Assembly (NCBI RefSeq): GCF_902713615.1
Contig: NC_052158.1
Location: 52,856,823-52,920,822 of the forward strand
Origin: Scyliorhinus canicula
Lineage: Eukaryota
Reading direction: 5' to 3'
Length of the DNA stretch: 64,000 nucleotides
Shown: one piece after another, positions 36,105 to 62,190 of the stretch
Position numbering within the stretch: the first letter of the stretch is position 1
Layout of the letters: every line of letters starts with the position of its first letter
The notes under the pieces: generated by a model
What the model was told of the DNA's origin: nothing
The model's input: the letters and a program-made list of their open reading frames with translations, nothing else
Database searches by the model: none
Made by a program: the position numbers and the translations under genes

Positions 36105-39100
36105 TTTAAAAAAAAATGCTTTTATTACAGATTACCTTTTAAACACAACAAAAATAGAAATACACAGTTCTGTACAAACACGTTACAGTTAACGTGCATT
36201 TGAGTTAGCCTCCAACACCCCACCCCGCCTTGCTCTCCCCAAACCCCTCCCCTTTCTCTTATATATTATGTTCTCAATATTGGTTTTCATTGCCATTCAT
36301 AATAGGGTTGTTTGACGACACACAGATTACATCCTGCTTGGGTATACCACATCGGCTGCCTGTGCTTCCAAACGTTCTCTCGGGGGCCGCATAGGGTGTG
36401 GTCGGCCTATGTGCCTCCTTACTTTCTCCAACCCCCCCTCCCTTCCTGTTGCTGTTTGTGGGGCCCCCTCCCCTTTGCTCTATTGGTTGTTGGCTACAAA
36501 CATGTCCTGGAACAGGTTTGTGAATGGCCTCCATATCTTGTGGAAGCCCTCTTCCGACCCCCAGATGGTGAATTTGAAGAAATTCCCACAGGTCTGCCAG
36601 CCAGTCTGCAGCTTTGGGTAGTGCTGCTGATCGCCAGCCAAGCAGGATTCTCTGGCAGATGATTAGGGAGGCAAAGGCTATGGTGTCGGCCCCATTCCCC
36701 ATAAAAAGTTCTGGTTGACCTGATACCTCAAAGACTGCCACTTTTGGGCACAGCTCCACTCTCACCCCCACAACCTTGGACATTGTGTTGAAGAAGGCTG
36801 TCCAGAACCTGACAAGTTTGGGGCATGCCCCAGAATATGTGGGCGTGGTTGGCGGGGCCTCCCTGGCACCGCTCACATTTGTCCTCCACATCCGGGAAGA
36901 ATCTGTTCATTCGGGCTCTGGTTAGGTGTACTCTATATACCAGTCGCATTCAGCTTAGCCTTGCGCATGTGGAGTTGACCCTGTTCAGTGCTTCGCTCCA
37001 GTGTCCCCACCCTATTTCAAACCCTAGCTCCTGAGGTGAATGTAATTCACACTGTAATATATATACCATATTATTGTAAGCGCAGTTACATTGCCCGACC
37101 ACTAGGGGGAGTAGCACTGGGAATGCATAGGAGTTTGTACAGGGCTCCACCCTTGGCTCCGCCCACGGCTCCTCCCCTGAACTGCTGTATAAAGATCGAT
37201 GCCCAGAGCCAGCCGACCAGTTCATCCAGGGTTCATCGTGTTACTGGCTGGCTCTGTTGTAAGTAGATTAAAACCACTATTCATATCTTAAAGCACGTGT
37301 CTCGTGAATTGATGGTCTCAACAATTTAATCTACTTAAGAAACAGTAAGGAACAATCATGGAATCAGCCCTCAAGCCTGAGCGATTGGAACTTGACCCAC
37401 AGGATGCAGAGGCAAAATAAATCTTTTCGCATTGGCTCCAATGTTTTAAGGCCTACCTGGCTGAAGCAAGCACAGCTGAAACGATGGAGGAACAGAAACT
37501 TAGCCTACTGCACGCGAGGGTAAGCCACAGAATTTCCACTCAACTAAATTGTACCAGCTCATATACTGAAGCCCTAGCGCTACTTGACAAAATGTATGTG
37601 AGGCCTGTAAATGAGGTCTATGCGCGACACGTGTTTACTACTCGCCGCCAGCGGCCTACGGAATCACTAGAAGAATTCCTCAGAGAACTAAAAACTCTAT
37701 CTCGGGACTGTAACTATCAGGCTGTAACTGCTGCAGAGCATAGAGACCTTGCTGTCCGCGATGTCTTTGTTGCAGGCCTGAGATCAAATTACGTGCGCCA
37801 GCGACTGCTGGAAAAGGGGGCCCAAAATCTTGAAGATACTGTTGAACTTGCTACGACTATGGAGGTCTCATTTCGCAGCCTCACCTCGTTCCCCGCGGAC
37901 CCCGCGACCCGCCATGGGCCCCCGACCAGCAACTCCTCCAGGCCTCCAGGGGCAGCAGGGTAGCATGGTGGTTAGCATAAATGCTTCACAGCTCCAGGGT
38001 CCCAGGTTCGATTCCCGAGCTGGGTCACTGTCTGTGTGGAGTCTGCACGTCCTCCCCCTGTGTGCGTGGGTTTCCTCCGGGTGCTCCGGTTTCCTCCCGC
38101 AGTCCAAAGATGTGCGGGTTAGGTGGATTGGCCAGGCTAAATTGCCCGTAGTGTCCTAATTAAAAGTAAGGTTAAGAGGGGGGTTGTTGGGTTACGGGTA
38201 TAGGGTGGATACGTGGGTTTGAGTAGGGTGATCATGGCTCGGCACAACATTGAGGGCCGAAGGGCCTGTTCTGTGCTGTACTGTTCTATGTCTATGTCTA
38301 TGCCTGCGCCACGCGGCCACCCAGCCACAATGCTGCCCCAGCCTGCAACTTTTGTGGCCAGCCCCAGCACCCGCGGCAGCACTGCCCGGCCCGCAACGCG
38401 ACGTGCAGCAGCTGCGGGCGAAAAGGACACTATGCCAGATTGTGTCTGGCGAAGAAAGCCCCAGCCTCTAACCCTCCCACGGCTCAAAGCACTCGTTCCC
38501 CGAATTCACAGGCCCGCAGGCCTCGAAGTGCTGCAGCCTGTATGCCGACTCCGCCCCCACCCAACATGTGCGTCTCATGGGGGTGGCCATCTTGGCAATC
38601 CACCTCCATGCGGCCGGCCATGTGCGACTCATGGGGGCAGCCATCTTGGGATCCACCCCATTCAAACTCTGAAACTTACCTCGACGACTACGAACTCAGA
38701 GGGCGGTCATCACGGGGCCACTCCAGCACAGCTGATCGAGCCGCCGACTACCCGCAACTCAGCGCAGTCACACTGGACCAATCGCGCCCAAAGCACCTCC
38801 ACAACTCGATGGCGATGGTCCAAATCAACGGGTACAACGCGCCGTGCCTTTTCGACTCCGGGAGCACTGAGAGCTTCGTACACCCAGATCTGGTAAGACG
38901 CTGTTCGCTCCCCGTTTTCCCTGCACAGCAAACTATCTCCCTCGCTTCGGGCTCCCACTCTGTTCAGATCCAAGGGTGCACCACCGTGACTCTCACAATC
39001 CAAGGCGCTAGCTATTCTAACTTCCAACTCTACGTCCTGCCCGAACTCTGCGCCTCACTCTTATTGGGACTCGATTTTCAATGTAATCTCAAGAGTCTCA

Positions 39101-42100
39101 CCCTCAGTTTCACCGGACCCCTACCCCCACTCACTATCTGCAGCCTGGCCACGTTGCGAATCTCCCCCCCTCCTCTCTTTGCCAACCTCACCCCGGACTG
39201 TAAACCCGTAGCCACTCGCAGCAGGCGATGCAGCCGACAGGACAGGGTGTTCATCCGATCGGAGGGGATCATAGAGGCCAGCAACAGCCCCTGGAGAGCT
39301 CAGGTGGTGGTCGTCAAGACCGGGGAAAAATTCCGCATGGTCATAGACTATAGTCAGACCATTAATAGGTTTACGCTCCTCGACGCATACCCCCTCCCCA
39401 GGATTGCAGACATGGTTAACCAGATCGCCCAGTATCGGATTTTTTCCACGGTGGATCTGAAGTCTGCATACCACCAGCTCCCAATCCACCCGGAGATCCG
39501 CCACTACACGGCATTCGAGGCGGATGGCCGCCTCTTCCATTTCCTCCGGGTTCCCTTCGGCGTCACAAATGGGGTTTCGGTGTTCCAACGAGCAATGGAC
39601 CGAATGGTGGACCAGTACGGGCTACGGGCCACATTCCCGTACTTGGATAACATTACCATCTGTGGCTATGACCAGCAGAACCACGACGCCAACCTCTACC
39701 GTTTTCTCCAGACGGCTCAGAAACTAAATCTAACAGGAGAAATGCGTTTTCCGCACGACCAGATATGCCGTGGAAAACGGAGTCCTGGGCCCCGACCCGG
39801 ACCGTATGCTCTTAGAAGTCCCTCTCCCTCATTGTCCCAAGGCCCTCAAACAGTGCTTGGGATTTTTTTTCCTATTACGCCCAGTGGGTCCCTCAATATG
39901 CGGACAAAGCCCGCCCACTCTTTAAGGCCACACTATTTCCCCTGTCAGCTGAGGTGCGCCAGGCCTTCAACTGCATCAAGGAGGACATCGCCAAAGCGGC
40001 CATGCGGGCGGTGGATGAATCCACTCCATTCCAGGTTGAGAGCGATGCCTCAGAGGTAGCTCTTGCAGCCACATTAAATCAGGCAGGGAGACCAGTCGCA
40101 TTTTTCTCCCGAAACCTCTCTGCTTCGGAACTCCGACACTCGGCAGTCGAAAAGGAAGCACAAGCCATTGTGGAGGCTATTCGTCACTGGAGGCACTACC
40201 TCGCAGGTAGGAGGTTCACCCTCATCACCGACCAAAGATTGGTTGCCTTCATGTTCGACAACTCGCAAAGGGGCAAAATTAAAAACGATAAAATTCTGCG
40301 GTGGAGGATCGAAGTCACCACCTATAGCTACGATATTAAATATCGACCGGGGAAGCTCAACGAGCCCCCAGATGCCCTATCCCGCGGGACGTGTGCCAGC
40401 GCACAGAGCGACCGCCTAAAAGTCATCCACAACGACCTCTGCCACCCGGGGGTCACCCTGCTCGCCCACTACATCAAAGCCCGAAATCTGCCTTTCTCCA
40501 CTGAGGAGGTAAAAGCTGTCACCAGAGACTGCCCGATCTGTGCGGAGTGCAAACCGCACTTCTATAGACCAGACAGGGCCCACCTGGTCAAGGCTTCTAG
40601 GCCCTTTGAACGCCTCGCGATCAATTTCAAAGGGCCACTCCCCTCAACTAACAGGAACGTTTACTTCCTAAACGTTATAGACGAGTTCTCCCGCTTCCCC
40701 TTTGCTATCCCATGCCCTGATATGACCTCCCACACAGTCATTAGGGCCCTGCATAGTATCTTCACCCTGTTTGGTTTCCCCAGATACGTGCACAGCGACC
40801 GGGGTTCGTCCTTCATGAGCGACGATCTGCGTCAGTACCTGCTCGACAAGGGCATCGCCTCGAGCAGGACTACCAGCTACAACCCCAGGGGGAACGGGCA
40901 GGTGGAGAGGGAGAACGCGTCGGTCTGGAAGACCGTCCTACTGACCCTCCGGTCCAGGAATCTCCCAGTCTCCCATTGGCAGGATGTCCTTCCAGACGCG
41001 CTCCACGCCATTAGGTCCCTCTTATGCACCGCGACCAATCAGACCCCTCACGAGCGGCTCTTTCGTTTTTCCAGGGGCACTACCACGGGAGTCTCTCTCC
41101 CGGCATGGCTGAAGACACCGGGCCCCGTACTCCACAGGAAGCACGTAAGGGCGCACAAAACTGACCCCCTTGTAGAGAAGGTGCGCCTGCTTCACTCAAA
41201 TCCCCAGTACGCCTTCGTAGAGCTCCCTGACGGCCGTCAGGACACGGTATCCCTCCGGGATCTAGTACCCGCAGGATCCAGCATCCCCACTATCACTGCA
41301 CAGGTCACTCTACACCCCACCCAGCCGCCCCCTCGCGCTCCTGAGCCCACTAGCTCGCTACAATTGTTTCGCGCACCCACACCGGCTAGCTCCCAGCGCC
41401 CCCAGTCCCCAGTCGAACCAGACGTGTATGGAGCTCGGATGCAATCGCCCCCGGAGTCCGCCATCGTACCCCAACCCACAACACCCATCCAGCCACCACA
41501 AGAGGCTGCAAACCCGGTGCTCCGCAGATCACAGCGGACGACTCGACTACCGGACAGACTCAATTTGTGAACCACCACACCCGCCGGACTTGATTTTTTG
41601 TAGGGGGTGAATGTGGTGAATGTAATTCACACTGTAATATATTATTGTAAGCGCAGTTGCGTTGCCCTACCACAAGGGGGAGTAGCACTGGGAATGCATA
41701 GGAGTTTGTACAGGGCTCCACCCTTGGCTCCGCCCACAGCTCCTCCCCCTGGACTGCTGTATAAAGATCGATGTCCAGTGCCAGCCGACCAGTTCATCCA
41801 GGGTTCATCGTGTTACAGGCTGGGTCTGTTGTAAGTAGATTAAAACCACTGTTCATATCTTAAAGCACGTATCTCGTGAATTGATGGTCTCATCAGCTCT
41901 TCCTTCCATTTTTCTCTTATTCTCTCGTGTCTTTTCCGAACAATCACCCGTATAGGTCTCCGCAATTTCCCCCTCCTAAGTTTGCCACGTCTAACAGTTC
42001 CTTCAGTAGTGTTTGTCTCGGCACCCATGGGCATGTCCTTGTTTTCCCTACGAAGGAAGCTTTTGACTTGTGTAAATCACAATTCATTCCTCCTGGCCAG

Positions 42101-43015
42101 TTGGAACTTCTCTGTCAGTTCGTCTCGTGTCGTCAGTCTGTTGTCTGTGTAGAAGTCACTAACTCTCAGTAGTCCCCCCTTCCTGTCTCCATCTTTTGAA
42201 GGTGGCACCCATGTTGGCTGGCGCGGACCTGTGATTGTTGCAGATGGGGACCATAGTGAGCATTTCGACCAGACTGGTCTTAATTGTTTCCACGTGGCTA
42301 CCACCCCTGGGCTTGGCTTGTAGGGATGGGAGCGCTGCTGTGGCCAGGGAATGGAGAAACAGCCCTGGAGATGAGGTGTCCTCTATTTTACCCATTCAGC
42401 TTGTGGTTCCTTTCCCCATCCCCTCACTATTTCTGCTGTGGCTGCCCAGTGGTAATATTTCAGGTTTGGGAGGGCCATGCTTCTAGTTCTTTGTCTAGCA
42501 CTTTTTTGAGAATCCTTGGGTTCCTCTTCCCCCACACAACATAGAACATAGAACATAGAACAGTACAGCACAGAACAGGCCCTTCGGCCCTCGATGTTGT
42601 GCCGAGCAATGATCACCCTACTCAAACCCACGTATCCACCCTATTCCCGTAACCCAACAACTCCCCCTTAACCTTACTTTTTAGGACACTACGGGCAATT
42701 TAGCATGGCCAATCCACATAACCCGCACATCTTTGGACTGTGGAAGGAAACCGGAGCACCCGGAGGAAACCCACACACACACGGGGAGGACGTGCAGACT
42801 CTGCACAGACAGTGACCCAGCCGGGAACCGAACCTGAGACCCTAGAGCTGTGAAGCATTTATGCTAACCACCATGCTACCGTGCTGCCCGTATAATGCCA
42901 TAATAATTTTTTCTACTGTGTTAAAGAAGGCCTTGGGGATGAAGATCAGGAGGAATCAAAACAGGAAGAGGAACATGGGCAGCAAATTCATTTTGATCGT
43001 CTGCACCCTTCCCGT
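36105..43015 (-). mobile_element. L1-clade LINE 3' part, split by a Gypsy element (37032-41895) and a V-SINE (42538-42890)
   Basis: ORF2 C-terminal motifs (RLVYRVHLTRARM..C..C..NHAH) continue on the far side of the Gypsy element (PNLKYYHWAA). Confidence 0.85.
37032..41895 (+). mobile_element. Near full-length Gypsy LTR retrotransposon with paired LTRs
   Basis: LTRs 37032-37323 and 41612-41895 (TG...CA); PPT-like agggggtgaa; probable 5-bp TSD GCTCC/GCTCT. gag; FDSGS protease; YLDN RT; ESDAS RNase H; HCC zinc finger and HSDRG integrase. Frameshifts near 39740-39950; V-SINE in gag at ~37950-38302. Confidence 0.95.
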
Positions 43016-43145
43016 CAGGCAGAGTGGGAGTGTGTCAGAGGCGGCGGAGGAGGATTCTGGGAGAAATCACCTCAGTCACCTTAACTGCACTGTGGGTACC
43101 CGAAGAACCCCTCCAGTGACAAACAGGAAGAATACAGGAAGAAAC

Positions 43146-43495
43146 AGGGCAGCACGGTAGCATGGTGGTTAGCACAATTGCTTCACAGTTCCAGGGTCCC
43201 AGGTTCGATTCCCGGCTTGGATCACTGTCTGTGTGGAGTCTGCACGTTCTCCCCGTGTGTGTGTGGGTTTCCTCCGGGTGTTCCGGTTTCCTCCCACAGT
43301 CCAAAGATGTGCAGGTTAGGTGGATTGGCCATGATAAATTGCCCTTAGTGTCCAAAATTGCCCTTAGTGTTGGGTCGGGTTACTGGGTTATTGGAATAGG
43401 GTGGAGGTGTGGGCTTGGGTAGGATGCTCTTTCAAAGAGCCGGAGCAGACTCGATGGGCCGAACGGCCTCCTTCTGCGCTGTAAATTCGATGATA
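43146..43495 (+). mobile_element. V-SINE (HE1-like)
   Basis: tRNA head, V-domain and CR1-like tail. Confidence 0.9.
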
Positions 43496-43499
43496 AGAT

Positions 43500-45070
43500 C
43501 ATGATCCAGTGGAGGCGGCAGAAGAGGATTCTGGGAGAAGTAAACTCAGTCACCTTGACTGTACTGTGGGTAGCCGAAGAGGTGGGATCAAAGAACGTTT
43601 AAGCCCAAAACACTAGATTAGTGTTTCCCTCCCTCCCTCCTCCTCTAACCTAAAAAAAGGCATTGTGAAGAGACAAGTAGGATATCACAGCCAGCAGATT
43701 AATTCTGGGAGAAGTCAACTCAGTCACCTCGATTGTACTGTGGGTAGCCGAACATAGAACATAGAACAGTACAGCACAGAACAGGCCCTTCGGCCCTTGA
43801 TGTTGTGCCGAGCAATGATCACCCTACTTAAACCAAAGTGACAAACAAGACCGACGTCCAGCAGAGGCAGCAGAAGAGGATTCTGGGAGAAGTCAACTCA
43901 GTCACCTCAACCAGCAGGAAGTAATTGGTTGGTGACTGGTTTTCTCTTGACATTGTAGTTGTTGTTGTAAGCTAACTTAAGGTTTAAGTGGCTTGAGAGG
44001 CGGTGTAAGTGGGAGGGATTGAAATTCCTGGGACACCGGAACCAGTTCTGGGGGAGGTAGGATTAGTACAAACCAGATGGTCTGCACCTGGGCAGGACTG
44101 GAACCAATGTCCTCGGGGGTGTTGTGTGCTAGCGTTGGGGAGGGTTTAAACTAATGTGGCAGGGGGATGTAGGAAGTCAGAGGGAATTAAATTGTGGGCA
44201 GAAACAAAAAGCAGTAAGGGGAAAAGTGAATGGCAGAGAAACCAAAGTCAAAAATCAAAAAGGATCACAGTACAGAGACTGTGGGGAATTCAGTGAATGG
44301 GTTCAGTAAGACTATGAAAAATAAAACACAGGGAGAGTGCACAAAACATGGTCTGAGAATGCAGGGCAGAGGTCAAGGGAAGCCTAGATTAAACTGCATT
44401 TATTTCAATGCAAGAGGCCTGATGGGCAAGGCAGACGAACTCAGGGCATGGATGGGTACCTGGGACTGGGATATTATAGCTATTACTGAACCATGGCTAA
44501 GGGAGGGGCAGGACAATGTTCCAGGGTCCAGATGCTACAGGAAAGATAGGACAGGAGGTAAGAGGGGAGGGGGAGTTGCGTTTTTGATTAGGGAGAATAT
44601 CACAGAAGTACTGAGAGGGGATAGATCCGAGGGTTCTGTGTGGGTAGAACTGAAAAATAAGAAGGGAGAGATGACTTTGATAAGGTTGTACTACAGGCCC
44701 TCAAATAGTTAATGAGAAATTGAGGAGCAAATATGCAAGGAGATTGCAGAGAGCTGCGAGAAAAATAGTGTGGTAATAGGTAAAACTTCAATTTTCCCAA
44801 CATTGACTGGGACAGCCATACAATAGGGGCATGGCTGGAGGGAGATTTGTTGAGTGTATTCAGGAGGAATTTCTCATTTAGTATGTGGATGGCCCAACCT
44901 CCTTTTGAGAAATAAGGAAGGGCAGTAGTTAGTGAGGGACCACTTTTGGACCAGTGACCATAATTTCATGAGTTTTAAGATAACTATGGAGAATGATACT
45001 TCTGGCCCAAAAGTAAAATTGCTAATTTGGGGCAAGGCTAATTTTGATGGTATTCCACAGGAACTTTCAA
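43500..45070 (+). mobile_element. Degenerate CR1 5' region (repeated gaggcggcagaagaggattctgggagaagtcaactcagtcacct units; ORF1 end; endonuclease)
   Basis: LNCIYFNARGL..KADEL, IIAITEPWL, GGGVAFLI and YYRPSNS APE motifs. Confidence 0.8.
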
Positions 45071-45071
45071 A

Positions 45072-47520
45072 AGTTTTTTTTATAAAATGTTTTTGATTGA
45101 CTTTTAATATTTTATATCCAACAAATTACAAATTATTAGAAAAAAAAAACAGCAAAAATTAACATGTATATTTACAGGTAAGCATCTTCATAACAACAAC
45201 TGTGGCCGCCCCCTTTAGCCGGCATACATATTTTACATTCCCCAATATGGCCGAGGCACATGTTTCTAGGCATTTATTTACAGTTTGGTTTTGGGCCTTA
45301 GCTAGCCATCAAACCCCCATAACGAACCCGTAGCCCCCCCCCCCCCCCCGATTCCCGTCCATTTTCCCCTGATTCTTGGCCACCCGACTATTCTTCCTCT
45401 TGTACGTTGTCCACAAACAGGTCCCGGAACAATTGCATGAATGGCTCCCATGTTCTGTGGAAGCCGTCGTCTGACCCTCGGATGGCGAATTTGATTTTCT
45501 CCATTTGGAGAGATTCCGAGAGGTCGGACAGCCAGCCTGCAGCTCTGGGCGGTGCTGCTGACCGCCAGCCAAACAGGATTCTACGGCGGGCCATCAGGGA
45601 GGCAAAGGCAAGGGCGTCCGCCCTCCTCCCCAGGAATAGATCTGGCTGGTCTGAAACCCCAAAGACCGCCACTATCGGGCATGGCTCCACCCTCGCCCCC
45701 ACCACTTTGGTCCAGTACTCCACAAGTCTGGGGCAAGACCAGAACATGTGGGCGTGGTTGGCCGGGCCTCTTTGGCACGTTCACCTGTCCTCCACCTCCG
45801 GGAAGAACCTACTCATACGGTTTCTTGTTAAGTGGGCTCGATGTACCACTTTTAGTTGCGTCAGGCTGAGCCTTGCGCACGTGGAGGTGGAGTTGACCCT
45901 ATGCAGTGCTTCGCTCCAGAGTCCCCACCCTATCTCCATCCCCAGGTCGTCCTCCCATTTCATTCTTGTTGCGTCCAGTACGGTGTCGTCCCTTTCTACC
46001 AGTCGGTCATACATGTCGCTACAGTTCCCTTTCTCTAGGATACTTGCGTCCAGTAGGTCTTTCAGTAGTGTCTGTCGTGGCGGTTGTGGGTACGTCCTTG
46101 TCTCCTTTCGTAGGAAGTTTTTGAGCTGCAGGTACTGTAGCTCGTTCCCCCCAGCTAGCCGAAATTTCTCTGTCAGTTCGTCCAGTGTTGCGATCCTGTG
46201 ATCCGTGTATAGGTCCCTGACTGTCAGTGTCCCCTCGTCCTGCCTCCACCTTTTGAAGGTGGCGTCAGTCAGTGCTGGTGTGAACCTATGGTTGTTACAG
46301 ATGGGAGCCTTGTCCGACATTCTGGTCAGGCCAAATTGCTGCCGCAGTTGGTTCCAGGATTGGAGGGTGGCTGTCACCACTGGGCTGCTGGAGTGTTTTT
46401 TGGGTGGGGATGGGAGTGCTGCCGTGGCGAGGGCCCGGAGGGAGGTCCCCATGCAGGGGGCCTCCTCCGCACGCAGCCACTCTGCTTCTGGCTCCTGGAT
46501 CCATCCCCTTACTCGCTCGGCTGCTGCTGCCCAGTGGTAGAATTGTAGATTCGGGAGGGCTAGCCCCCCCCTGGATTTTGTTTTTTGTAGGACCCTCTTT
46601 GGGATCCTAGCATTTTTACCCCCCCCATACGAACGCCATGATAAGTTTGTCCAGCACTTTGAAAAAGGCCTTGGGGATGTAGATCGGAATGGATCTAAAC
46701 AGGAAGAGGAACCTGGGCAGTACGTTCATTTTGATCGTCTGGACTCTCCCCGCGAGGGAGAGCGGGAGTGTGTTCCATCTTTGCAGGTCCTTTTTTACTT
46801 CCTCCGTCAGGCTGGTGAGGTTCCATTTGTGGATCCCTTTCCAGTTATGGGCTATTTGGATCCCCAGGTAGTGGAATTTGTGTCGGGCTTGTTTGAACGG
46901 CAGCCCTTTAGTGCTGCCCCTCCCCCCCCCCCCCCCCCCCCCCCCCTTGCGGGTGTACTGGGAAGATCTCGCTTTTGCTCATGTTGAGTTTGTAGCCCGA
47001 GAAGGCTCCAAACTCTTTCGCGATGATTCCGTCCATGCTGCTTTGTGGGTCCGAGATGTAGAGGAGCAGATCATCTGCATAGAGTGAGACTCTGTGCTCT
47101 CTGCCTCCCCTTCGGATCCCCCTCCAATTTTTTGCTGCCCTGAGCGCGATTGCTAGCGGTTCGATTGCTAGTGCGAACAGCAGCTGGGACAGTGGGCATC
47201 CTTGTCTGGTGCCCCTGTGCAGCTGGAAGTATTGGGAGTTGGTATTGTTGGTCCGTTCACTCGCCATGGGAGCGTTGTATAGGAGCTTTACCCAAGCGGT
47301 GAACCCTGTTCCAAGCCAGAACCGCTCCAGTACCTCTATGAGCGGTATATCGACTCTATCGAAGGCCTTTTCTGCGTCCAGGGAGACGATCACCTCTTGT
47401 GTTCTCTCCCCGGAGGGGGTCATTATCACGTTCAGCAGGCGCCTGATGTTCGAGGTAAGCTGTCTACCTTTGACGAAGCCCGTCTGGTCCTCTGTGACCA
47501 CCTCAGGTACACAGTCTTCT
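45072..47520 (-). mobile_element. L1-clade LINE ORF2 3' half, frameshifted
   Basis: EDQTGFVKGR, SLDAEKAFDRV, RGTRQGCPLS, SLYADDLLLY; Cys-rich C-terminus. Confidence 0.92.
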
Positions 47521-51000: not shown

Positions 51001-52497
51001 TTCACTAGATTCTGGGGTGGTCCCGGTGGATTGGAAATTAGCAAACGTGACGCCACTGTTTAAAAAAGGAGGTAGGCAGAAAGCAGGAAATTATAGGCCA
51101 GTGAGCTTAACTTCGGTAGTAGGGAAGATGCTGGAATCTATCATCAAGGAAGAAATTGCGAGGCATCTGGATAGAAATTGTCCCATTGGGCAGACGCAGC
51201 ATGGGTTCGTAAAGGGCAGGTCATGCCTAACTAATTTAGTGGAATTTTTTGAGGACATTACCAGTGCAGTAGATAACGGGGAGCCGATGGATGTGGTATA
51301 TCTGGATTTCCAGAAAGCCTTTGACAAGGTGCCACACAAAAGGTTGCTGCATAAGATAAAGATGCATGGCATTAAGGGTAAAGTAGTAGCATGGATAGAG
51401 GATTGGTTAATTAATAGAAAGCAAAGAGTTGGGATAAATGGGTGTTTCTCTGGTTGGCAATCAGTAGCTAGTGGTGTCCATCAGGGATCCGTGTTGGGCC
51501 CACAATTGTTCACAATTTACATAGATGATTTGGAGTTGGGGACCAAGGGCAATGTGTCCAAGTTTGCAGATGACACTAAGATGAGTGGTAAAGCGAAAAG
51601 TGCAAAGGATACTGGAAGTCTGCAGAGGGATTTGGATAGGTTAAGTGAATGGGCTAGGGTCTGGCAGATGGAATACAATGTTGACAAATGTGAGGTTATC
51701 CATTTTGGTAGGAATAACAGCAAACGGGATTATTATTTAAACGATAAAATATTAAAGCATGCCGCTGTTCAGAGAGACTTGGGTGTGCTAGTGCATGAGT
51801 CACAGAAGGTTGGTTTACAAGTGCAACAGGTGATTAAGAAGGCAAATGGAATTTTGTCCTTCATTGCTAGAGGGATGGAGTTTAAGACTAGGGAGGTTAT
51901 GTTGCAATTGTATAAGGTGTTAGTGCGGCCACACCTGGAGTATTGTGTTCAGTTTTGGTCTCCTTACTTGAGAAAGGACGTACTGGCGCTGGAGGGTGTG
52001 CAGAGGAGATTCACGAGGTTAATCCCAGAGCTGAAGGGGTTGGATTATGAGGAGAGGTTGAGTAGACTGGGACTGTACTCGTTGGAATTTAGAAGGATGA
52101 GGGGGGATCTTATAGAAACATTTAAAATTATGAAGGGAATAGATAGGATAGATGCGGGCAGGTTGTTTCCACTGGCGGGTGACAGCAGAACTAGGGGACA
52201 TAGCCTCAAAATAAGGGGAAGTAGATTTAGGACTGAGTTTAGGAGGAACTTCTTCACCCAAAGGGTTGTGAATCTATGGAATTCCTTGCCCAGTGAAGCA
52301 GTTGAGGCTCCTTCATTACATGTTTTTAAGGTAAAGATAGATCGTTTTTTGAAGAATAAAGGGATTAAGGGTTATGGTGATCGGGCCGGAAAGTGGAGCT
52401 GAGTCCACAAAAGACCAGCCATGATCTAATTGAATGGTGGAGCAGGCTCGAGGGGCCAGATGGCCTACTCCTGCTCCTAGTTCTTATGTTCTTATCT
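48036..52497 (+). mobile_element. Near full-length CR1 LINE: 5' UTR, ORF1 (48415-49359), ORF2 (49364-52402, one in-frame TGA at 50441-50443) and tail
   Basis: ORF1 has CxxC..CxxC zinc finger and SGNH-esterase-like IGDLIVRG/HIGTND/DGLHL motifs. ORF2 has APE (YLNARS, ITETW, GDFN, SDH) and RT (YLDFQKAFD, QGSVLGP, FADD); (CTTATGTT) tail. Confidence 0.96.
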
Positions 52498-53844
52498 CTT
52501 CCCTGTCTACTCTTCTCCTTAGTCACAATGAGTTTATGATCTAGTACCTTACTGGCTTTCGTTGCTGCCTCTTTACTGACCTCTAACTTCCTTATCTGGT
52601 TCCCATCCACCTGCCACATTAGTTTAAAACCTCCCCAACAGTGTTAACAAAAGCACCCTCTGGAACATTGGTTCCAGTCCTGCCCAGGTGTATACCATCC
52701 GATCTGTAATGGACCCACCCCCCCAGAACCGGTTCCAATGCCCCATAAATCTGAACCCCTCCCTCCTGCACCATCTCTCAAGCCACCTATTAATTTTAAC
52801 TATTAGGAGGATTGCATGGATGAGATCCAGTTTCGAATCATGTCTGGATTACCTGGGAAAATTGATCAGAATGGCCAGTCAGACTGAGCTGCCTCTTTCA
52901 CCATCCAATCAGAACCAGAGTTATCCTCTTGCTGGAACCCTTCTGTTCCGGCATCAACTTTATCATTTCCAATGAAACAGTTTTCCTCTACATTTAAAAA
53001 AAAAATCATTTATAGGATGTGGATGTCGATGGCTAGGCCAGCATTTATTGCCCATCCCTAGTTGCTCTTCTGAGGTGGTGGTGAGTTGCATTCTTGAACC
53101 GCTGCAATTCCGGAGGTGTAGTTACACCCATAGTGCTGTTAGGGAGGGTGTTCTAGGATTTTGACCCAGTGACAGAGAAGGAATGGCGATATATTTTTGA
53201 GTCAGGGTGGTGAGTGACTTAGAGAGGAACCTCCAGGTGGTGTGGTTCCAAGATATCTGCTGCTCTTGTCCTTCTAGATGGTAGTGGCCGTGAGTTTGGA
53301 AGGTGCTGCCTAAGGAATCTTGGGGAGTTCCTGCAGTGCATCTTGTAGATGGTACACATGCTGCCACTGTTCATTGGTGGTGGAGGGTTTGAATGTTTGT
53401 GGAGGGGGGCAATCAAGCAGGCTGCTTTATCCTAGATGGTGTCAAGCTTCTCGAGTGTTGTTGGAGATAATACTCTCTACTTGCCTGGATGAGTGTGAGT
53501 TACACGCCTGACGTGCCTTATCGATGGAGGACAGGTTTTGGGGGTGGGGGGAGGGCTGGGTGTCTGGGGTGAGTTACTCATCATAAGATTCCTAGCCTTT
53601 GACCTGTTCTGGTAGCCACAGCATTAATGCGGTTACTTTCTGATCAATGGTAACCGCCAGGATGTTGATTGTGGGGGATTCAGTGATGGTAATGCCGAAT
53701 AATGTCAAGGGGTGATGGTTAGATCCTCTCTTGTCGGAGATGGTCATTGCCTGGCACTTGTGTGGCACGAATGTAACTTGCCACTTGCCAACCCAAGCCT
53801 GGATATTGTTCAGGTCTTGCTGCATTTTGGACATGGACTGTGTG

Positions 53845-54742
53845 TTGATCACAAGTTAACTAGATGCAATACAACTGAGCAAACACTAGAGGGGGCACGG
53901 GAGAGCCATACAAATACACCGGGACAGGAAGTGAGGACACACTTCACAGAAGGCAGAACTCGTAGCAGGACACAGACATACCAGCTAGTAGCATTTGAGG
54001 TAGCCGTAGGTAAAGGTCTGAAGAGAGAACAAATTCACAATAAAGCATCTTCTCCACATTTGAGACTACGAGCTTTATTAAGACACGAGTAACAACACAT
54101 GGTACCCAGGAGTGGCTTCAGACGCTTACTACAGGACAACTCAGTGGCAGACACAGAAAGCTCAAAATGGCATGGAAATCTCCTACTGGACATTCGACTT
54201 GGGAAGACATCGCTGATGGGAGGATGTGCCTTGGATTCCCACTTCAGCTGGACACGACTGGAAATGTAAGAAGTGTCTGGAAAAGGTTTAAACAATGGTT
54301 CGATTTCGGTATCATAGCAAATGATGCAGCAGCAGCCTCAGACGAAATTAAAATAGCAATTCTCATCGAAGGACATGAAGCTACGAAAGTTTATAATGGA
54401 TTTAAATACTCAAAAGGTGAAGACAGAAACAGCTTACAAACAATACTAAACAAATTTGAAGAGTACTGTAAGGAATTTGAACAGCAAGGCATGCTCAGAG
54501 GCCAAACTGCACAGAGACTGAGTGATGCAAAACTTAAACAATCACGAAAAGAACAAGAAATCGCGAATGAAAAGTACAGATCAAAAAGAAGAAATAACAT
54601 GAATTTTTCACAAAGCCAAAACGCTGAAATCCAGTCCAGATCGGAAAGAAAAGGTAACTTGCAACTTTTAGAAAGAAAAAAAACGCTGAAATCCGCGATA
54701 AAATGGCGTCGGAGCACATTTTGCAGTCTCGGGCAAGCAAAA
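53845..54742 (+). mobile_element. Gypsy 5' LTR, PBS (TGGTACC) and gag start, cut off by the assembly gap
   Basis: LQLDTTGNVRSVWKRFKQWFDF gag N-terminus. Confidence 0.75.
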
Positions 54743-55243
54743 ANNNNNNNNNNNNNNNNNNNNNNNNNNNNNNNNNNNNNNNNNNNNNNNNNNNNNNNNN
54801 NNNNNNNNNNNNNNNNNNNNNNNNNNNNNNNNNNNNNNNNNNNNNNNNNNNNNNNNNNNNNNNNNNNNNNNNNNNNNNNNNNNNNNNNNNNNNNNNNNNN
54901 NNNNNNNNNNNNNNNNNNNNNNNNNNNNNNNNNNNNNNNNNNNNNNNNNNNNNNNNNNNNNNNNNNNNNNNNNNNNNNNNNNNNNNNNNNNNNNNNNNNN
55001 NNNNNNNNNNNNNNNNNNNNNNNNNNNNNNNNNNNNNNNNNNNNNNNNNNNNNNNNNNNNNNNNNNNNNNNNNNNNNNNNNNNNNNNNNNNNNNNNNNNN
55101 NNNNNNNNNNNNNNNNNNNNNNNNNNNNNNNNNNNNNNNNNNNNNNNNNNNNNNNNNNNNNNNNNNNNNNNNNNNNNNNNNNNNNNNNNNNNNNNNNNNN
55201 NNNNNNNNNNNNNNNNNNNNNNNNNNNNNNNNNNNNNNNNNNN
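54743..55243. other. Assembly gap (about 500 N)
   Basis: Run of N. Confidence 1.
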
Positions 55244-55920
55244 GACACTCAGTCCCTCCCCTCACTCCCCGACACTCAGTCCCCCCCTCACTCCCCGACA
55301 CTCAGTCCCCCCTCACTCCCCGACACTCAGTCCCTCCCCTCACTCCCCGACACTCAGTCCCCCCCCTCCCCGACACTCAGTCCCCCCTCTCACTCTCCGA
55401 CACTCAGTCCCCCCCCTCACTCCCCCCCCCTCACTCCCCGACAGTCCCCCCTCACTCCCCGACAGTCCCCCCTCACTCCCCGACTGTCCCCCCCGACAGT
55501 CCCCCCCTCACTCCCCGACAGTCCCCCCTCACTCCCCGACTGTCCCCCCCTCTCACTCCCCGACAGTCCCCCCCTCTCACTCCCCGACAGTCCACCCCTC
55601 TCACTCCCCGACAGTCCTCCCCTCTCACTCCCCGACTCTCAGTCCCCCCCTCACTCTCCGACACTCAGTCCCCTCTCACTCCCCGACAGTCCCCCCCTCT
55701 CACTCCCCGACACTCAGTCCCCCCTCACTCCCCGACAGTCCCCCCCTCTCACTCCCCGACACTCAGTCCCCCCCTCACTCCCCGACACTCAGTCCCCCCC
55801 TCACTCCCCGACACTTAGTCCCCCCTCACTCCTTGGCACTCAGTTCCCCCTCACTCTCCGACACTCAGTCACCCCCTCTCACTCCCCGACTCTCAGTCCC
55901 TCCTCCCTCACTCCCTGACA
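55244..55920. repeat. C-rich ~20-26-bp minisatellite (GACACTCAGTCCCCCCCTCACTCCCC) in the intron after the alpha2 exon
   Basis: Visible array starting about 25 bp from the alpha2 donor and running into the gap. Confidence 0.93.
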
Positions 55921-55948
55921 CTCTGTCTCTTTCCCCTCGTTCACTTAC

Positions 55949-56221
55949 CGACACTCAATGCCCTCTCGCCAGTCTTCAGATATTTCTTCAGATTACTGAT
56001 ACACTCCTGCTCCAGGTAACTCTTCCAGTATTGGTTGTCAGACTTGAACCCGTCACACTGCTTTTTGGCGCTATTTGCTAATGGCAATGCCGTTTGCCAT
56101 AGCATCTTCTCTTTGTCGAAGAAGAGGAAATCTTGCCCATCCCAGCCAAACACAGTGAATGCGTTGGTGCTCCCATCCGTGTGAAGGTCACAGCCCCACG
56201 TTCGCTGATATGTGTGAAAAA
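55949..56221 (-). CDS. MHC class I heavy chain, alpha2-domain exon (273 bp, phase 1-1)
   Basis: Acceptor tttctgccaatgacag and donor G|gtaagt at 55948-55943; in frame with the alpha1 exon. Reads (V)FHTYQRTWGCDLHTDGSTNAFTVFGWDGQDFLFFDKEKMLWQTALPLANSAKKQCDGFKSDNQYWKSYLEQECISNLKKYLKTGERALSV, with HTxQ..GC, WDG-DF and YLE..C..LKKYL motifs and the disulfide Cys pair. Confidence 0.96.
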
Positions 56222-56734
56222 CTGTCATTGGCAGAAAAATAGATCCAGTCAGAAACTGCCAAGGTGGTGAGTGTCTCCGTTATGTTGCTCAGAATACTTT
56301 CAACTAAATGGGAACAAAGTCCCATAGAGAGCACGCTAAGCCACGGAGAATGCGCGGCCAAGGCCACATACAGCCCCGTTTTTTACAGAGGAGCTCCGCT
56401 CACCGGAACACCTCTGTGTAGCGAGAGATCAGGACACCATTTGTCAATCATGACCCAACATCCGAGGCCCCTGAAGCGAACCTCGACCTCTGCATCAGCC
56501 TCAAAGCAGTATGGGAGGGTCCCCGGCACCCTCCCCCAACACCCACACAGGGCAGCCCATCCTGACCACACATGTGCAATAAATGTCAGCCTGGCATCCT
56601 GGCAGTGCCCTTGCCAGCTGGTAGTGCCATCAGGGCACCTTGGCAGTGCCAAGCTGGCTGTGCCAGGATGCCCAGGTGGCAAGTGTCAGGGCACACCTTG
56701 CCCGATCCCCTGGGAGACCTGAACAAGTGCCGTT

Positions 56735-57235
56735 CTGTCTTGTCATGTGAGAGTACCTTTAAGAAATGGGTGTTTATTACTGCAGTGATGTCAGAGTGTG
56801 GGTGGAGCTGGGCTGTCTGTCAGCTTTTAGTTTCAATTTGAGAAAAGCTTGGGTGTGTCTTGGGTGTTTATTTTGGTTTTGTTTCAGTGTTGGAGCTGAA
56901 GCCAGACTAAGCAGGTGTACTGTTGTTCTTTCTGCCATGAAAAGACTATCACTTGATCATTTGGTGAATTCAGAATTATAAATGTTCTCAGTAGTGAATG
57001 TAAACCTAATGTGCTTCTGTTAAAAGATTTTTGTCTTCTGGATGTTGTTTGGGAATTTATTCAAGATTTTCTTAGTGTTGCATTCTTTGGGGGGGGGGGG
57101 GGGTGTATTTTAATTAATGGTTGCTAAATTGTTCGCTGTATGTTTTAAAAAGGTTAACTTGAGTTCATAGAATAAACATTGTTTTGCTTTAAAAAATACT
57201 TTTCCATTTTTTGTTGTACCACACCTGCCCGTGGG
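56735..57235. mobile_element. Solo-LTR-like element in MHC intron 2
   Basis: Begins TGTCATG, contains AATAAA and a GT-rich U5-like tract, and ends near ccacacc; no internal coding sequence. Confidence 0.55.
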
Positions 57236-58133
57236 GCATTTTGGGGTTCTCTAATCCCTGGCCCATAACAGTCTGGTTTCCGTTTCAGGAGACCAGTGTT
57301 TAATGACGCTCGCCCAAGGTCTCCGAGGTGAAGGTGTTGGACCTCAAAGCCACAGGTACCTTGGGAATCTGCAGATTAGAATGAGACTTACGGTCTTGTT
57401 CTAATACGCAGATTTGCAACATCTCACAAGATTGTGTTGAATCTTGTGAGGCGTTGCAAGCTGGGTAGATCCCGGGAGCGGGGTCTCCTGGCTTTCATCG
57501 CCCTCACTGCGTCACAGCGAGCTGCTTTGCAGGCATAGCGTGGCTGCTGGATCGCACCCTATTCCTCACACGCAATGTCAGTGTGGTGATGAACTGGGAA
57601 TTGTTGTTTTTCCTCTCCCCAGAACACTGAAACCACCCTCCCCAACCCAGGGGCACCTGCCTTCCCATACCAATCTCTCTGAGGCACCAGATCACAGTCT
57701 CATCACCCTGAGACATGGATACACACCCTTCCTCCAGGGCACTGAAAGTGCCCACATTCCTCCATGGGACACCCCAATCTCCAGAATGCACTGAAATAAT
57801 GATAACCCATCCCCAGGGGAACCAAATGTTCCACACTCTGCCCAAAGAGCACAGCCTCCTCTCAACAATCCCCCCACAGTCCACTGGTTAGCCCCTCAAC
57901 AGGGCAAAGACATTCTCTCCCATCTTGAGCGGGCATCACACCTTTCTGCCCCATTCTCCAGAGAGATCATGTCCCCCATCTCCATCGGACAAACGGACCC
58001 CTCCCTATACCTTCACTCAGATATCAGACCACTGATATTGGCCACCATTTCCTGACCTCACAAACCAAGCCATCACCACATTACTGAACCTAAGTCACAA
58101 GAAAAATACATGCGACGGAGGATGAGAACTCAC

Positions 58134-58394
58134 CACTAGTCTGGTTGGTCTTCTTCATTAGGATCTGAATATTGGCCCTTCCCCATTGCTCCCATTCCTG
58201 TGCCTCCCGCGTGTACCGCTCCCAGTATGCGGGTCCCTCATTCTCTGCGATCCAGCGCTGTGAAGGAATCATCTCCTTCCGAACACTGTCATAGTAAACA
58301 ATCTGCACGTCGTCCATATAACCCACAACAACAAAGTCAGGTACGCCAGGAATAGGGGACATAGCAGTGTAGAAATAATGCAGAGAATGAGAGC
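58134..58394 (-). CDS. MHC class I heavy chain, alpha1-domain exon (261 bp, phase 1-1)
   Basis: Acceptor ctttgtgtttcag at 58395+ and donor G|gtgagt at 58133-58128. Open frame (G)SHSLHYFYTAMSPIPGVPDFVVVGYMDDVQIVYYDSVRKEMIPSQRWIAENEGPAYWERYTREAQEWEQWGRANIQILMKKTNQTS shows class I hallmarks SHSLxYF, GYxDD, YDS, YWE and the NQT glycan site. Confidence 0.96.
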
Positions 58395-58578
58395 CTGAAA
58401 CACAAAGAATAAGAAAGACATCAGGACATTAACTCTAAAACACCAACCCCAGAGAGAGAGAGAGAAAGAAAGAGAAAGAGAAAAAGAGAGAGAGTGAGAG
58501 AGATTGAGAGAGAGAGATCAGGACAAGAACCCCAAAACACCAACCCCAGAGAGACAGATAGACATCTGGATATGAACC

Positions 58579-61500
58579 TGTCACAAGATAAGGACAATTA
58601 GATTCCAGATGACCTCATCCGAATCGGAGGTCTCCCAGGGTTTCTCCCTTAACTGGAAGCTCAGCTCTCCAGTATAAAGCCGCTGCCTGGGAGCAGCTCG
58701 GGGTGGAGGCCCTTTGGGGAGCGGAGAGTGTAATATTGGGAATAAATAGAATCTTTATTTACCACCTGGCTGATGAGAATAAATGGAGCTGCTGCCGACG
58801 CCAGACACTACACATCAGAGCCACTTAGAGAGGCCTCGCATCCTTCCGCTGACATGCCACCCATTGGTAAACTTGAGCCTTTTCAGGCAGAGGTTGATGA
58901 CTGGGGATGTCGAAAAAATGCAATACATTTTGCGTACAAATGGGATCGACGGGAATGTGCAACGGACAATGGTGTTGCTTACGGCTTGCGGGGGCGGGGT
59001 CCACATACAGCCTCATTAAGAGCCTCACCCACCCACAGCCGCTGGATACCTGGCTGTTCACCGCGTTGGTGGCCTCAGTGAAGGGGCATCTAGACCCGCA
59101 ACCGCTATTAATCGTCCGAAGATTCCTCACAGCCGCTCAGACCCAGTCGGAATCGACCAGCAACTTCATGGCTCACCTGCGAAAATCAGCAGAAACATGC
59201 GAATTTGGTGCCGATCTTTTTTTTTTTTTTATAAATTTAGAGTACCCAATTATTTTTTCCAATTAAGGGGCAATTTAGTGTGGCCAATCTACCTACTCTG
59301 CACATCTTTGGGTTGTGGGGGTGAAACCCACGCAGACACGGGGAGAATGTGCAAACTCCACACGGACAGTGACCCAGGGCCGGGATTCGAACCCGGGTCC
59401 TCAGCGCCGTAGGCAGCAATGCTAACCACTGTGCCACCGTGCTTTTGGTGCCGATCTTAATGAATCACTGCGAGACAGATTAGTTTGTGGAATCTGTGCC
59501 GGCGACACACAGAGAAAAGTTCTGGGCGTCACTGACCTGATATTGCAAAGCACTGTGGAGATTGCCATCTCCCGTGAAAGCCCGGCAAACGGGGTTCCAG
59601 GAGCTCAGACGAATGGTGGTCTGAACCTCGGCTATCAAACTGCCCGCCACTGGCTCCCGCTCCGGAGGCAGAGCCCCGACAGTGGGCGCCCTCCACAGTG
59701 ACACAGGGCACCACCTCTGAGGCCCGGAATGACACAATACGGTGACCGGGAATATCATTCCTGGCTGGTGACCACCAGCCGTTGGATACCAGGGAACAGC
59801 CGGCCTAGAGAGGGCCCTCTATCCTGCCACCCCACTAGGCGAAACCGCCACCAAAGGGACCAGGCCCCTCCGTGGACAATGAATAGGAGGCCCACCGCAG
59901 GCTGTATTGCATTCCTTCGTCTTGGTTCGATCCTTTGCGAACACCTTTAAGTTTCGTCCCACCGGACATTGGTGGGAAATTCCACCGGGGCCAGGATCGA
60001 GCCGAGACTGACGCTTGATGACGTTCGCCTTTATTCACCTTCGCGGTGGGAAATTCAGTGTAAATCCGGAATTTTGGAGAATGAGCCACTGGGACACCAG
60101 CCGTTGTGTTGGCCCAGATGGTACCAGTCTCCATCGAGTGCGGGCACAAGGACACAAATCCCGTACCAGCCTCCCCGAACAGGCGCCGGAATGTGGCAAC
60201 TAGGGGCTTTTCACAGTAACTTCATTTGAAGCCTACTCATGACAATAAGCAATTTCATTTCATTTCATTTCATTCATCAACATGTGGGCCACCTGCAAAG
60301 TCGCATCCAAGAATTGCCAGTTCCGATTGTAGAGTTATCAGCCCAAAACTGCCCCCAGCTCAAACTGACACCTCCGCCCAGTCGCCAGCATTGGTTTTGG
60401 ATGCACCTACCGTAGAGAAAACTGGTCTTGGACGTACAGGACGGTGAAATGATGAACTACGAGAAACCCTTGGACACTGATTCAGAGGTCGACATGGACA
60501 TGTTGCCACCACCCGAGCCAACGGTGTCTGTTGCAGCACCTATGACCCCACCGAGACGTTCTGCCTGAAGGCGATGCTCCCCAGTCCGGTACAGACGTTT
60601 CGTTTTGGTCTTGGATGGCCGTCTCCGGGCTCAGACGCCTCGACCACCTCCGGGCTCGGACGCCTGGACCATCTCCGGGCTCGGACGCCTGGACAACCTC
60701 CGGGCTCGGACGCCTCGACCACCTCCGGGCTCGGACGCCTCGACCACCTCCGGGCTCGGACGCCTCGACCACCTCCGGGCTCGGACGCCTCGACCACCTC
60801 CGGGCTCGGACGCCTCGACCACCTCCGGGCTCGGACGCCTCGACCACCTCCGGGCTCGGACGCCTCGACCATCTCCGGGCTCGGACGCCTCGACCACCTC
60901 CGGGCTCGGACGCCTCGACCACCTCCGGGCTCGGACGCCTCGACCACCTCCGGGCTCGGACGCCTCGACCACCTCCGGGCTCGGACGCCTCGACCACCTC
61001 CGGGCTCGGACGCCTCGACCACCTCCGGGCTCGGACGCCTCGACCACCTCCGGGCTCGGACGCCTCGACCACCTCCGGGCTCGGACGCCTCGACCACCTC
61101 CGGGCTCGGACGCCTCGACCACCTCCGGGCTCGGACGCCTCGACCACCTCCGGGCTCGGACGCCTCGACCACCTCCGGGCTCGGACGCCTCGACCATCTC
61201 CGGGCTCGGACGCCTCGACCACCTCCGGGCTCGGACGCCTCGACCACCTCCGGGCTCGGACGCCTGGACCACCTCCGGGCTCGGACGCCTCGACCACCTC
61301 CGGGCTCGGACGCCTCGACCACCTCCGGGCTCGGACGCCTCGACCACCTCCGGGCTCGGACGCCTGGACCATCTCCGGACTCGGACGCCTGGACCATCTC
61401 CGGACTCGGACGCCTCGACCACCTCCGGGCTCGGACGCCTGGACCATCTCCGGACTCGGACGCCTCGACCATCTCCGGACTCGGACGCCTCGACCATCTC

Positions 61501-62190
61501 CGGACTCGGACGCCTCGACCATCTCCGGACTCGGACGCCTGGACCATCTCCGGACTCGGACGCCTCGACCATCTCCGGGCTCGGACGCCTCGACCATCTC
61601 CGGGCTCGGACGCCTGGACCATAAGACATAGGAGCGGAATTAGGCCACTCGGCCCATCGAATCTGCTCCGCCCTTCAATAATGGCTGATATTTTCTCATT
61701 CCCATTCTCCTCCCTTGTCCCCATAACTCCTGACCCCTGATTAATCAAGAGCCTATCTATCTGTCTTAAAGACACTCAGTGATTTGGCCTCCACAGCCTT
61801 CAGCGACAAAGAGTTCCACAGATTCACCACCCTTTGGCTGAAGAAATCCTTGCTTAGATACGAGGCCTAAAACTGCTCCTAATATTCCAAATGGGGTCTG
61901 ACCAGAGCCTTACATAGCCTCAGAAGTACATCCCTGGTTTTGTCCCAGTCGCAGATATGGACATGGACATATCTCCGGATTTGGGGGATATAATAACCCT
62001 CAGGAAGGTCACAAGATAAGGACAATTAGACTCTAGATGACCTTCTCTGAATGAGAGTTCCCCTGGTAACGAGGGGGCGGGTTCCACCATTAACTGAGAG
62101 CTGAGCTCTCTCAAATAAAAACCCCAGCCTGGGAGCAGAGGAGGCCCTTCCGGGAGTGTGGAGTGTAATATTGTGAATAAATAGAGCGGA
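58579..62190 (+). mobile_element. Internally deleted Gypsy element in MHC intron 1, antisense to the gene, with nested SINEs, a 25-bp VNTR and a CR1 fragment
   Basis: Related LTR copies (tcacaagataaggacaattaga...) at ~58579-58810 and ~62008-62190; gag MPPIGKLEPF; V-SINE 59215-59443 (-); tRNA-SINE ~60150-60280; CR1 tail 61620-61945 (-). Confidence 0.8.
60620..61620. repeat. CpG-rich 25-bp minisatellite (CGACCACCTCCGGGCTCGGACGCCT), about 40 copies
   Basis: Directly visible; 25-aa periodic ORFs in all six frames reflect a stop-free 25-nt unit. Confidence 0.96.

Follow-up and report, generated by a model that had tools for sequence, protein, structure and literature searches.

The window analysed here is a 64,000-nucleotide stretch of chromosome 13 of the small-spotted catshark Scyliorhinus canicula (C13:52856823-52920822), and the gene in question corresponds to the public model XP_038671319.1 (P0001; 234 residues), annotated as 'major histocompatibility complex class I-related gene protein-like'. 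Our analysis indicates that it is probably an expressed, essentially monomorphic class Ib gene of the shark UAA/UBA/UCA radiation, in which the clamp for the peptide C-terminus has been replaced and of which the 3' exons have remained unassembled. A first-pass annotation, made from the letters of the window without database searches, had proposed a nonclassical class I molecule devoid of the C-terminus-binding triad. This proposal was upheld by the class I fold of the product, by the finding of spliced RNA and by the alignments, which placed A143, Q146 and C147 at the positions of the triad.

The leader, alpha1 and alpha2 exons encode residues 1-194 of XP_038671319.1, the alpha1 exon matching the model at 100%. 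This part of the gene is organised as follows.

512-562 nt past the window end (L003:512-562), minus strand: leader exon (MRRLMLLVILCGAVSAG), identified by tblastn with 100% identity
58395-64000, minus strand: intron 1 (partial), which runs out of the window
58134-58394, minus strand: alpha1 exon (exon 2), 261 nt, phase 1, defined by translation and splice sites
56222-58133, minus strand: intron 2, 1912 nt, GT..AG
55949-56221, minus strand: alpha2 exon (exon 3), 273 nt, phase 1

The product of the alpha1 exon, (G)SHSLHYFYTAMS...NQTS, includes Y7, Y59, K84 and the N86 sequon. The acceptors of the alpha1 and alpha2 exons are AG and the donors are GTGAGT/GTAAGT. Translation and reading of the splice sites showed that the exon coordinates first proposed were exact and that both exons are indeed open with canonical splice sites. 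The sequence upstream of the leader exon is a promoter sequence rich in CCAAT/ATTGG, and the gene appears to be present as a single copy.

In classical class I molecules, residues 84, 143, 146 and 147 clamp the C-terminus of the peptide and W167 forms the end wall of the A-pocket, while Y7, Y59, Y159 and Y171 make hydrogen bonds with the peptide N-terminus. We compared these positions with those of Triakis and nurse-shark UAA in MAFFT and HMMER alignments, which contained no gaps across the alpha2 helix (residues 133-171) because this helix has the same length in shark UAA and in the catshark gene. Compared to the classical set, the usual residue was found to be replaced at the following codons.

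56067-56069, minus strand: codon of A143
56058-56060, minus strand: codon of Q146
56055-56057, minus strand: codon of C147
55992-55994, minus strand: codon of N167

The gene therefore departs, at these four positions, from the residues that are invariant around the peptide termini in classical class Ia molecules; the additional change R84K is conservative. Among about 345 class I alpha2 domains, the usual residues were T143 in 227, K146 in 206, W147 in 266 and W167 in 277. Y7, Y59, Y159, Y171, C101, C164, D119 and the N86 sequon (NQT) were all kept. Proper alignment did not restore T, K or W at positions 143, 146 and 147, so that the residues K84, A143, Q146, C147 and N167 called by eye stand, as do those that had been listed as retained (with C101 and C164 as a pair). 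The accompanying description of an 'intact A-pocket' was overstated, since the end wall of this pocket, W167, is replaced by N, a change that the same annotation had itself listed. The gene deviated from 9 out of 50 columns with at least 90% conservation, the highest number among 51 aligned class I alpha1-alpha2 sequences (median, 1), and retained the other 41, including all structural ones. As there is no cysteine in alpha1 and there are three in alpha2, C147 has no obvious partner; the covalent adduct and the heavy-chain dimer initially suggested for it are hypothetical.

The encoded protein has a class I alpha1-alpha2 platform with the C101-C164 disulfide. A PF00129 match was precomputed for P0001, and 482 class I chains were retrieved at E<=1e-20 in a search of the PDB, the top one being nurse-shark UAA (6LUP; 192 bits). 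Structure prediction, which had been suggested as a check, was performed on the heavy-chain platform: an alignment-based AlphaFold2 model had a pLDDT of 92.1 and displayed the strands and helices expected for class I, and Foldseek returned nurse-shark UAA 6LUP as its best structural match (TM 0.92).

The platform combines the four conserved tyrosines of the N-terminal side, the alpha2 disulfide and the N86 glycan with a replaced clamp (T143A, K146Q, W147C) and a replaced end wall (W167N). Closed-ended peptide binding of the classical type would not be expected, because the classical roles of residues 84, 143, 146, 147 and 167 suggest that a peptide would not be held by both ends. The molecule might instead accommodate an overhanging (open-ended) peptide or a non-peptide ligand, or its principal role might be to engage an innate-type receptor, independently of any ligand in its groove, like other class Ib molecules.

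Every sampled word of the alpha2 exon was present in 18 sequencing runs from 8 studies. We placed the contigs of four runs (four studies) on positions 55900-58450 of the window. In each of the four, one contig connected 56221 directly with 58134, and the 1912 nt left out have GT..AG ends when read on the gene strand. Such an exact splice joint means that these four runs are RNA, and it is the alpha1-alpha2 joint of the spliced transcript that the first-pass annotation had proposed to search for. There was not a single differing letter across the contigs in the alpha2 exon, and only one in the alpha1 exon (58261 T>C, synonymous, Ser TCA>TCG, in 2 of the 4 runs). The total variation thus amounted to one synonymous site per 534 coding nt in the four RNA datasets, a figure that comes from a small sample and from contigs, which lose rare variants. 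In this respect the gene differs from a classical locus, the high allelic polymorphism of alpha1 and alpha2 that marks the classical class being missing from these data. Because the four RNA assemblies carry the same alpha2 letters, in agreement with the genome, sequencing error, which had been raised as a possible source of the odd residues, is ruled out.

Both introns contain repeated sequences. Interspersed repeats at about 56674-57275, in intron 2, reached summed contig depths of up to about 42,000 in RNA assemblies; this is due to an abundantly transcribed repeat family rather than to expression of the intron. In intron 1, positions 60623-61621 of the window are occupied by 40 copies of a 25-bp unit (97% identity) with several open frames (ORFs of the PSPEVVEASEPGGGRGVRARRWSRR... 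type).

As originally noted, the alpha1 domain is close to classical shark UAA, its closest relative in sequence being nurse-shark UAA (61% identity, E 1.5e-32). The alpha2 domain showed at most 51% identity to any sequence. In a joint tree, the gene fell within the class I clade of the selachians (98/97), to which rays and chimaera do not belong. In the free tree, it was placed outside the UBA clade (98/95) and outside the UCA-like clade (98/93), the latter comprising sequences of the Squalus Q8HWH7 type and the catshark genes at 43.69 Mb and 53.02 Mb, with an alpha3 of the type YSCQ[YF][ED]Q. When the gene was forced into these clades, approximately unbiased (AU) tests gave p values of 0.165 for UBA and 0.135 for the UCA-like set. 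Since neither membership is rejected, we give the gene no lineage name; the names used here rest on reference sequences. The gene lies inside the shark UAA/UBA/UCA radiation and is assignable to no named lineage. This is what the phylogeny proposed as a check yielded, and it makes the suggested derivation from UAA plausible, although the trees do not settle it. The gene is an old copy with a frame that was kept open, rather than a recent duplicate, because dS is saturated (at least 0.9 to every catshark paralogue) while no stop or frameshift was present in 534 nt. P0011, with its look-alike motif ASVAKKQLD, was rejected as an unrelated multi-domain, teleost-like protein.

The 3' part of the gene poses a different problem. 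Downstream of the alpha2 exon, the window contains the following elements.

55244-55927, minus strand: minisatellite opening intron 3, with a 24-26 nt unit repeated about 27 times (TRF)
54744-55243 (C13:52911566-52912065), no strand: 500-N scaffold gap, true size unknown, 0.7 kb downstream of alpha2
54167-54743: retroelement gag-like ORF (MAWKSPTGHSTWEDIADG...), cut off by the scaffold gap
52852-52997, minus strand: last coding exon according to the public model (tail EENCFIGND...DWPF and stop codon, followed by a possible GT donor), located by tblastn of P0001

The unit of the intron 3 minisatellite (...ACTGAGTGTCGGGGAGTGAG... on the gene strand) is a derivative of the 3' end of the alpha2 exon together with its splice donor, and is essentially limited to this locus and to the UBA genes at 32.4-32.5 Mb. 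The array continues straight into the assembly gap, the far flank of which (up to 54743) ends within the gag-like ORF and not within a minisatellite. In run X1, a 1259-nt contig matched the genome precisely as far as 55949, the last base of the exon, and extended for a further 594 nt. The contigs of three other runs ended 28-35 nt past the end of the alpha2 exon, as might be expected from a 31-mer assembly graph if the next exon is common to another transcript. The 40-residue tail of XP_038671319.1 is encoded at 52869-52997 (tblastn). Runs carrying alpha2 contained at most 9% of the words of 52404-52997, and X1 was not among the holders listed for these words (lowest listed share, 0.07). As RNA runs with alpha2 hold so little of it, the annotated tail exon is unsupported as the true 3' end. 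Because the minisatellite abuts the gap, the X1 contig continues for 594 nt and the tail lacks RNA support, the 3' exons are probably unassembled, the most likely event being that the contig broke within the minisatellite. The alpha3, transmembrane and cytoplasmic exons would exist but lie outside the assembly, with the donor-derived minisatellite as the presumed cause of the break, and the 234-residue public model with its 40-residue tail would be an annotation artefact.

The segment of the window that includes the tail exon (52488-53840) has a second copy, with 92-98% identity, at C13:52977969-52979280, 12 kb downstream of the transmembrane exon of the neighbouring class I gene. The tail exon is also similar, over part of its length, to sequence found upstream of the gene's own leader (ctgattggatggtg). 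Several catshark class I genes open their intron 3 with a minisatellite made of the alpha2 end and the donor (also at C13:53021822-53022860 and C13:32419469-32419809), and this donor-type minisatellite appears to be characteristic of the family and to interrupt long-read contigs.

Another interpretation is that the gene is a truncated or decaying duplicate, comprising only leader, alpha1 and alpha2 and spliced into unrelated sequence, so that it would give a short soluble protein or a substrate for nonsense-mediated decay and have no antigen-presenting role. We regard this as unlikely, yet worth serious attention, for a series of observations speaks in its favour and weighs against the presence of a complete class Ib gene. 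No alpha3 or transmembrane exon was found by motif search or tblastn in the window, in the 20 kb past the window start or less than 0.95 Mb downstream, and an alpha3-like exon was absent from the 76 kb between C13:52836823 and the alpha2 exon. The tail of the public model adjoins interspersed repeat sequence, and its exon has a 98% copy 69 kb away (C13:52978333-52978478). Besides the record number of departures from conserved columns mentioned above, alpha2 has the longest end branch of the tree (1.85 vs a median of 0.25, i.e. 7x), possibly because of relaxed constraint. The sister of the gene in the joint tree (93/83) is a catshark class I pseudogene at 36.82 Mb (C13:36.81-36.83 Mb; L019:1431-7445 and L021:1523-1699) whose alpha1 contains a stop and has lost 2 residues; this pseudogene also lacks W167 (CIASL) and has an alpha3 of the UCA type. 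Pairwise dN/dS values against the catshark paralogues were 0.25-0.48, which suggests constraint but is a weak test of it given that dS is saturated. Finally, no annotated protein, those of S. torazame included, exceeded about 53% identity, so that no annotated orthologue is available, which is odd for an old constrained gene. These points are to be set against the fact that the RNA assemblies carrying alpha2 do not hold the tail exon, and that the position expected for alpha3 coincides exactly with a scaffold gap, beside a minisatellite that plausibly broke the contig. Furthermore, 534 nt have stayed open at a dS of about 1 or more to all paralogues, with 41 of the 50 conserved columns kept, and expression was detected in 8 studies. 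The initial statement that the gene 'may be functional' thus holds for the two exons, which are open and spliced in RNA; for the whole gene it is tentative, no alpha3 or transmembrane exon having been found in the window or nearby and a 500-N gap following alpha2.

The only UAA-type alpha3 of the assembly is present elsewhere on the same chromosome. It forms, with a transmembrane exon, a minus-strand segment at C13:51954133-51954721 (L004:134-719), these two exons being 66% and about 50% identical to Triakis UAA, respectively. No alpha1 or alpha2 was found above it, and a 500-N gap (C13:51958308-51958807) lies 3.6 kb upstream. It could accordingly be proposed that the gene at 52.91 Mb is the 5' half of the only UAA-type gene of the catshark and that the segment at 51.954 Mb is its 3' half, displaced by a scaffolding error of about 0.95 Mb. 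What makes one think of this is the existence, on the same strand of the same chromosome and each beside a 500-N gap, of one alpha1-alpha2 pair without alpha3 and one UAA-type alpha3/transmembrane pair without alpha1-alpha2, as well as the lack of an annotated full-length UAA protein in either Scyliorhinus species. The contig end just below the 51.958 Mb gap also carries one donor-type minisatellite unit (22 of 24 nt matching), but such minisatellites are a family trait, also found in the UBA genes and in the neighbouring gene. A 46-nt match between this contig end and intron 2 of the 52.91 Mb gene was too short to be of use.

We nevertheless consider a single split gene to be distinctly improbable. 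Just above the 51.958 Mb gap is a 32-bp minisatellite (unit CACAGAGCCCCTGTAAATAAACCCC...; L004:4809-9994, from C13:51958808 onward), which extends over at least 5 kb according to TRF. Its unit had about 900 genome-wide matches on that strand and, among the matches listed, all were at 51.9589-51.9634 Mb. It also occurs immediately 5' of the alpha1 exon in the UCA-like paralogue at 43.69 Mb (C13:43690265-43691178). From its sequence, the unit reads on the gene strand as a splice acceptor plus the start of an alpha1 exon and thus looks acceptor-derived. By contrast, it is absent from intron 1 of the 52.91 Mb gene. Because this alpha1-flanking array adjoins the 51.958 Mb gap, the gap more likely hides the own alpha1 and alpha2 exons of UAA. 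In addition, the 72-kb contig carrying the 52.91 Mb gene joins its upper neighbour within a single minisatellite, which supports the present placement of the gene, and a monomorphic gene without T143, K146 and W147 is unlike classical UAA. Two separately broken genes are therefore more likely than one split gene, and the classical class I gene of the catshark itself appears to be split by a 500-N gap.

Proteasome-type matches were found on chromosome 13 at 51.76 and 51.88 Mb and TAP-type matches at 51.65, 51.82 and 52.49-52.52 Mb, the class I positions of this region being 51.95 Mb (UAA-type alpha3), 52.91 Mb (the gene studied here) and 53.02 Mb (UCA-like gene). Our gene is about 0.4 Mb from the nearest TAP-like match and about 1 Mb from the proteasome matches and the UAA-type alpha3. 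It lies at the edge, not in the core, of the class Ia (TAP/PSMB) region. Verissimo et al. 2023 mentioned, as unpublished data without sequences or names, class Ia-like genes near TAP/PSMB/UAA, which are said to be surrounded by zinc-finger genes (PMC10751288). The catshark gene, too, is class Ia-like and is separated from the TAP/PSMB/UAA block by a few hundred kb, and S. canicula was among the genomes used in that work. In contrast with those genes, a scan of the 194 kb around it with a C2H2 pattern found no zinc-finger gene. It is probably one of the class Ia-like genes mentioned in that paper, which gives no sequences for comparison.

In the neighbouring class I gene (L008:4862-5652 and L007:590-3877; C13 53.02 and 52.99 Mb), the alpha3 is of the UCA type and follows the alpha2 at a distance of 29 kb. 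The alpha1 of this gene reads HSWLVMY and lacks Y7, and T143, K146 and W147 are kept. Positions 26694-45075 of the window are repeated about 41.5 kb onward, on the other side of the gene (C13:52925001-52949291; about 18-24 kb, 92-98% identity). The repeated segment reflects a recent segmental duplication or, alternatively, an assembly duplicate.

Among living vertebrates with an MHC, sharks are the oldest, and from their class Ib genes it can be seen how early antigen-presenting molecules came to perform other functions. The gene described here joins the nonclassical class I genes already known from sharks. It is an expressed class Ib gene, apparently present in one copy and situated at the margin of the class Ia region of the catshark, and neither end of its groove would be closed. 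The findings also matter in practice. XP_038671319.1 probably has a false 3' end, and the breaks in this gene and in the UAA-type gene both adjoin minisatellites derived from splice sites. Owing to this false 3' end and to the split UAA-type gene, both beside minisatellites, mining of the catshark assembly for MHC genes will miscount or misname genes.

Shark UAA is the closest known system. It gave the best match in sequence and in fold, and has domains of equal length, including the extra residue of the alpha2 helix. Y7, Y59, Y159, Y171, the C101-C164 disulfide and the N86 glycan are also common to both, and the catshark gene lies in the TAP/PSMB chromosomal neighbourhood, though at its edge. 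The catshark gene differs from UAA by T143A, K146Q, W147C and W167N, by an alpha2 that is only 43-50% identical, by a near absence of polymorphism in the four RNA datasets and by the fact that no alpha3 or transmembrane exon was seen.

We also compared it with the UBA lineage (Hefr-19, the catshark cluster at C13 32.0-32.5 Mb and the Mustelus asterias paralogues). These are likewise UAA-related shark class Ib genes, with variable F-pocket residues and with introns containing minisatellites derived from splice sites. Unlike them, the catshark gene lies 20 Mb from the UBA cluster, is apparently single copy and is devoid of the UBA alpha1 motifs REQWMV and W.RKK. Positions 143/146/147 are I/R/L in catshark UBA P0207, and I/W/C and I/R/C in the UBA-like proteins P0215 and P0208 of Mustelus asterias, while P0079 also carries a Cys at 147. 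Thus, neither Cys147 nor the loss of the C-terminal triad is unique to this gene, both being encountered again in further class Ib genes of sharks.

The public name raises the question of a shark counterpart of MR1, presenting small metabolites. When the alpha2 domain was searched by itself, MR1 chains headed the PDB matches (69 bits, gapless), and overall they ranked second (144 bits, 41% identity). Y7, Y62, W69, R94 and Y152 of MR1 were matched in the alignments, several aromatic groove residues being shared. However, classical Triakis UAA scored even higher against MR1 (168 bits), indicating that likeness to MR1 is a general property of shark class I. Moreover, the lysine of MR1 that forms a Schiff base (K43) aligned with Met, the gene nests within the selachian class I clade, providing no phylogenetic link to mammalian MR1, and no MR1 of cartilaginous fish appears in a 2025 review (PMC12562908). 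On the basis of the control search with UAA and of the Met at the position of K43, orthology is rejected, a metabolite-presenting MR1 counterpart is scarcely credible, and the 'MR1-like' name is an artefact of automatic annotation.

A bolder scheme, which we deem very improbable, would have a monomorphic, UAA-derived class Ib molecule capture small electrophilic ligands covalently through the thiol of Cys147 at the groove rim, with the help of a partly MR1-like aromatic cradle (Y7, Y62, W69, Y152). If this were true, the thiol would be an analogue of the Schiff base of Lys43 in MR1 that arose independently in sharks, and the repeated occurrence of Cys147 among class Ib genes of sharks, those of Mustelus included, would represent a shared device for ligand capture rather than drift. 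With respect to all of these systems, what is distinctive in the catshark gene is the combination of conserved N-terminal tyrosines, loss of both W167 and the triad, and a free Cys, in an apparently single-copy, monomorphic gene beside the class Ia region.

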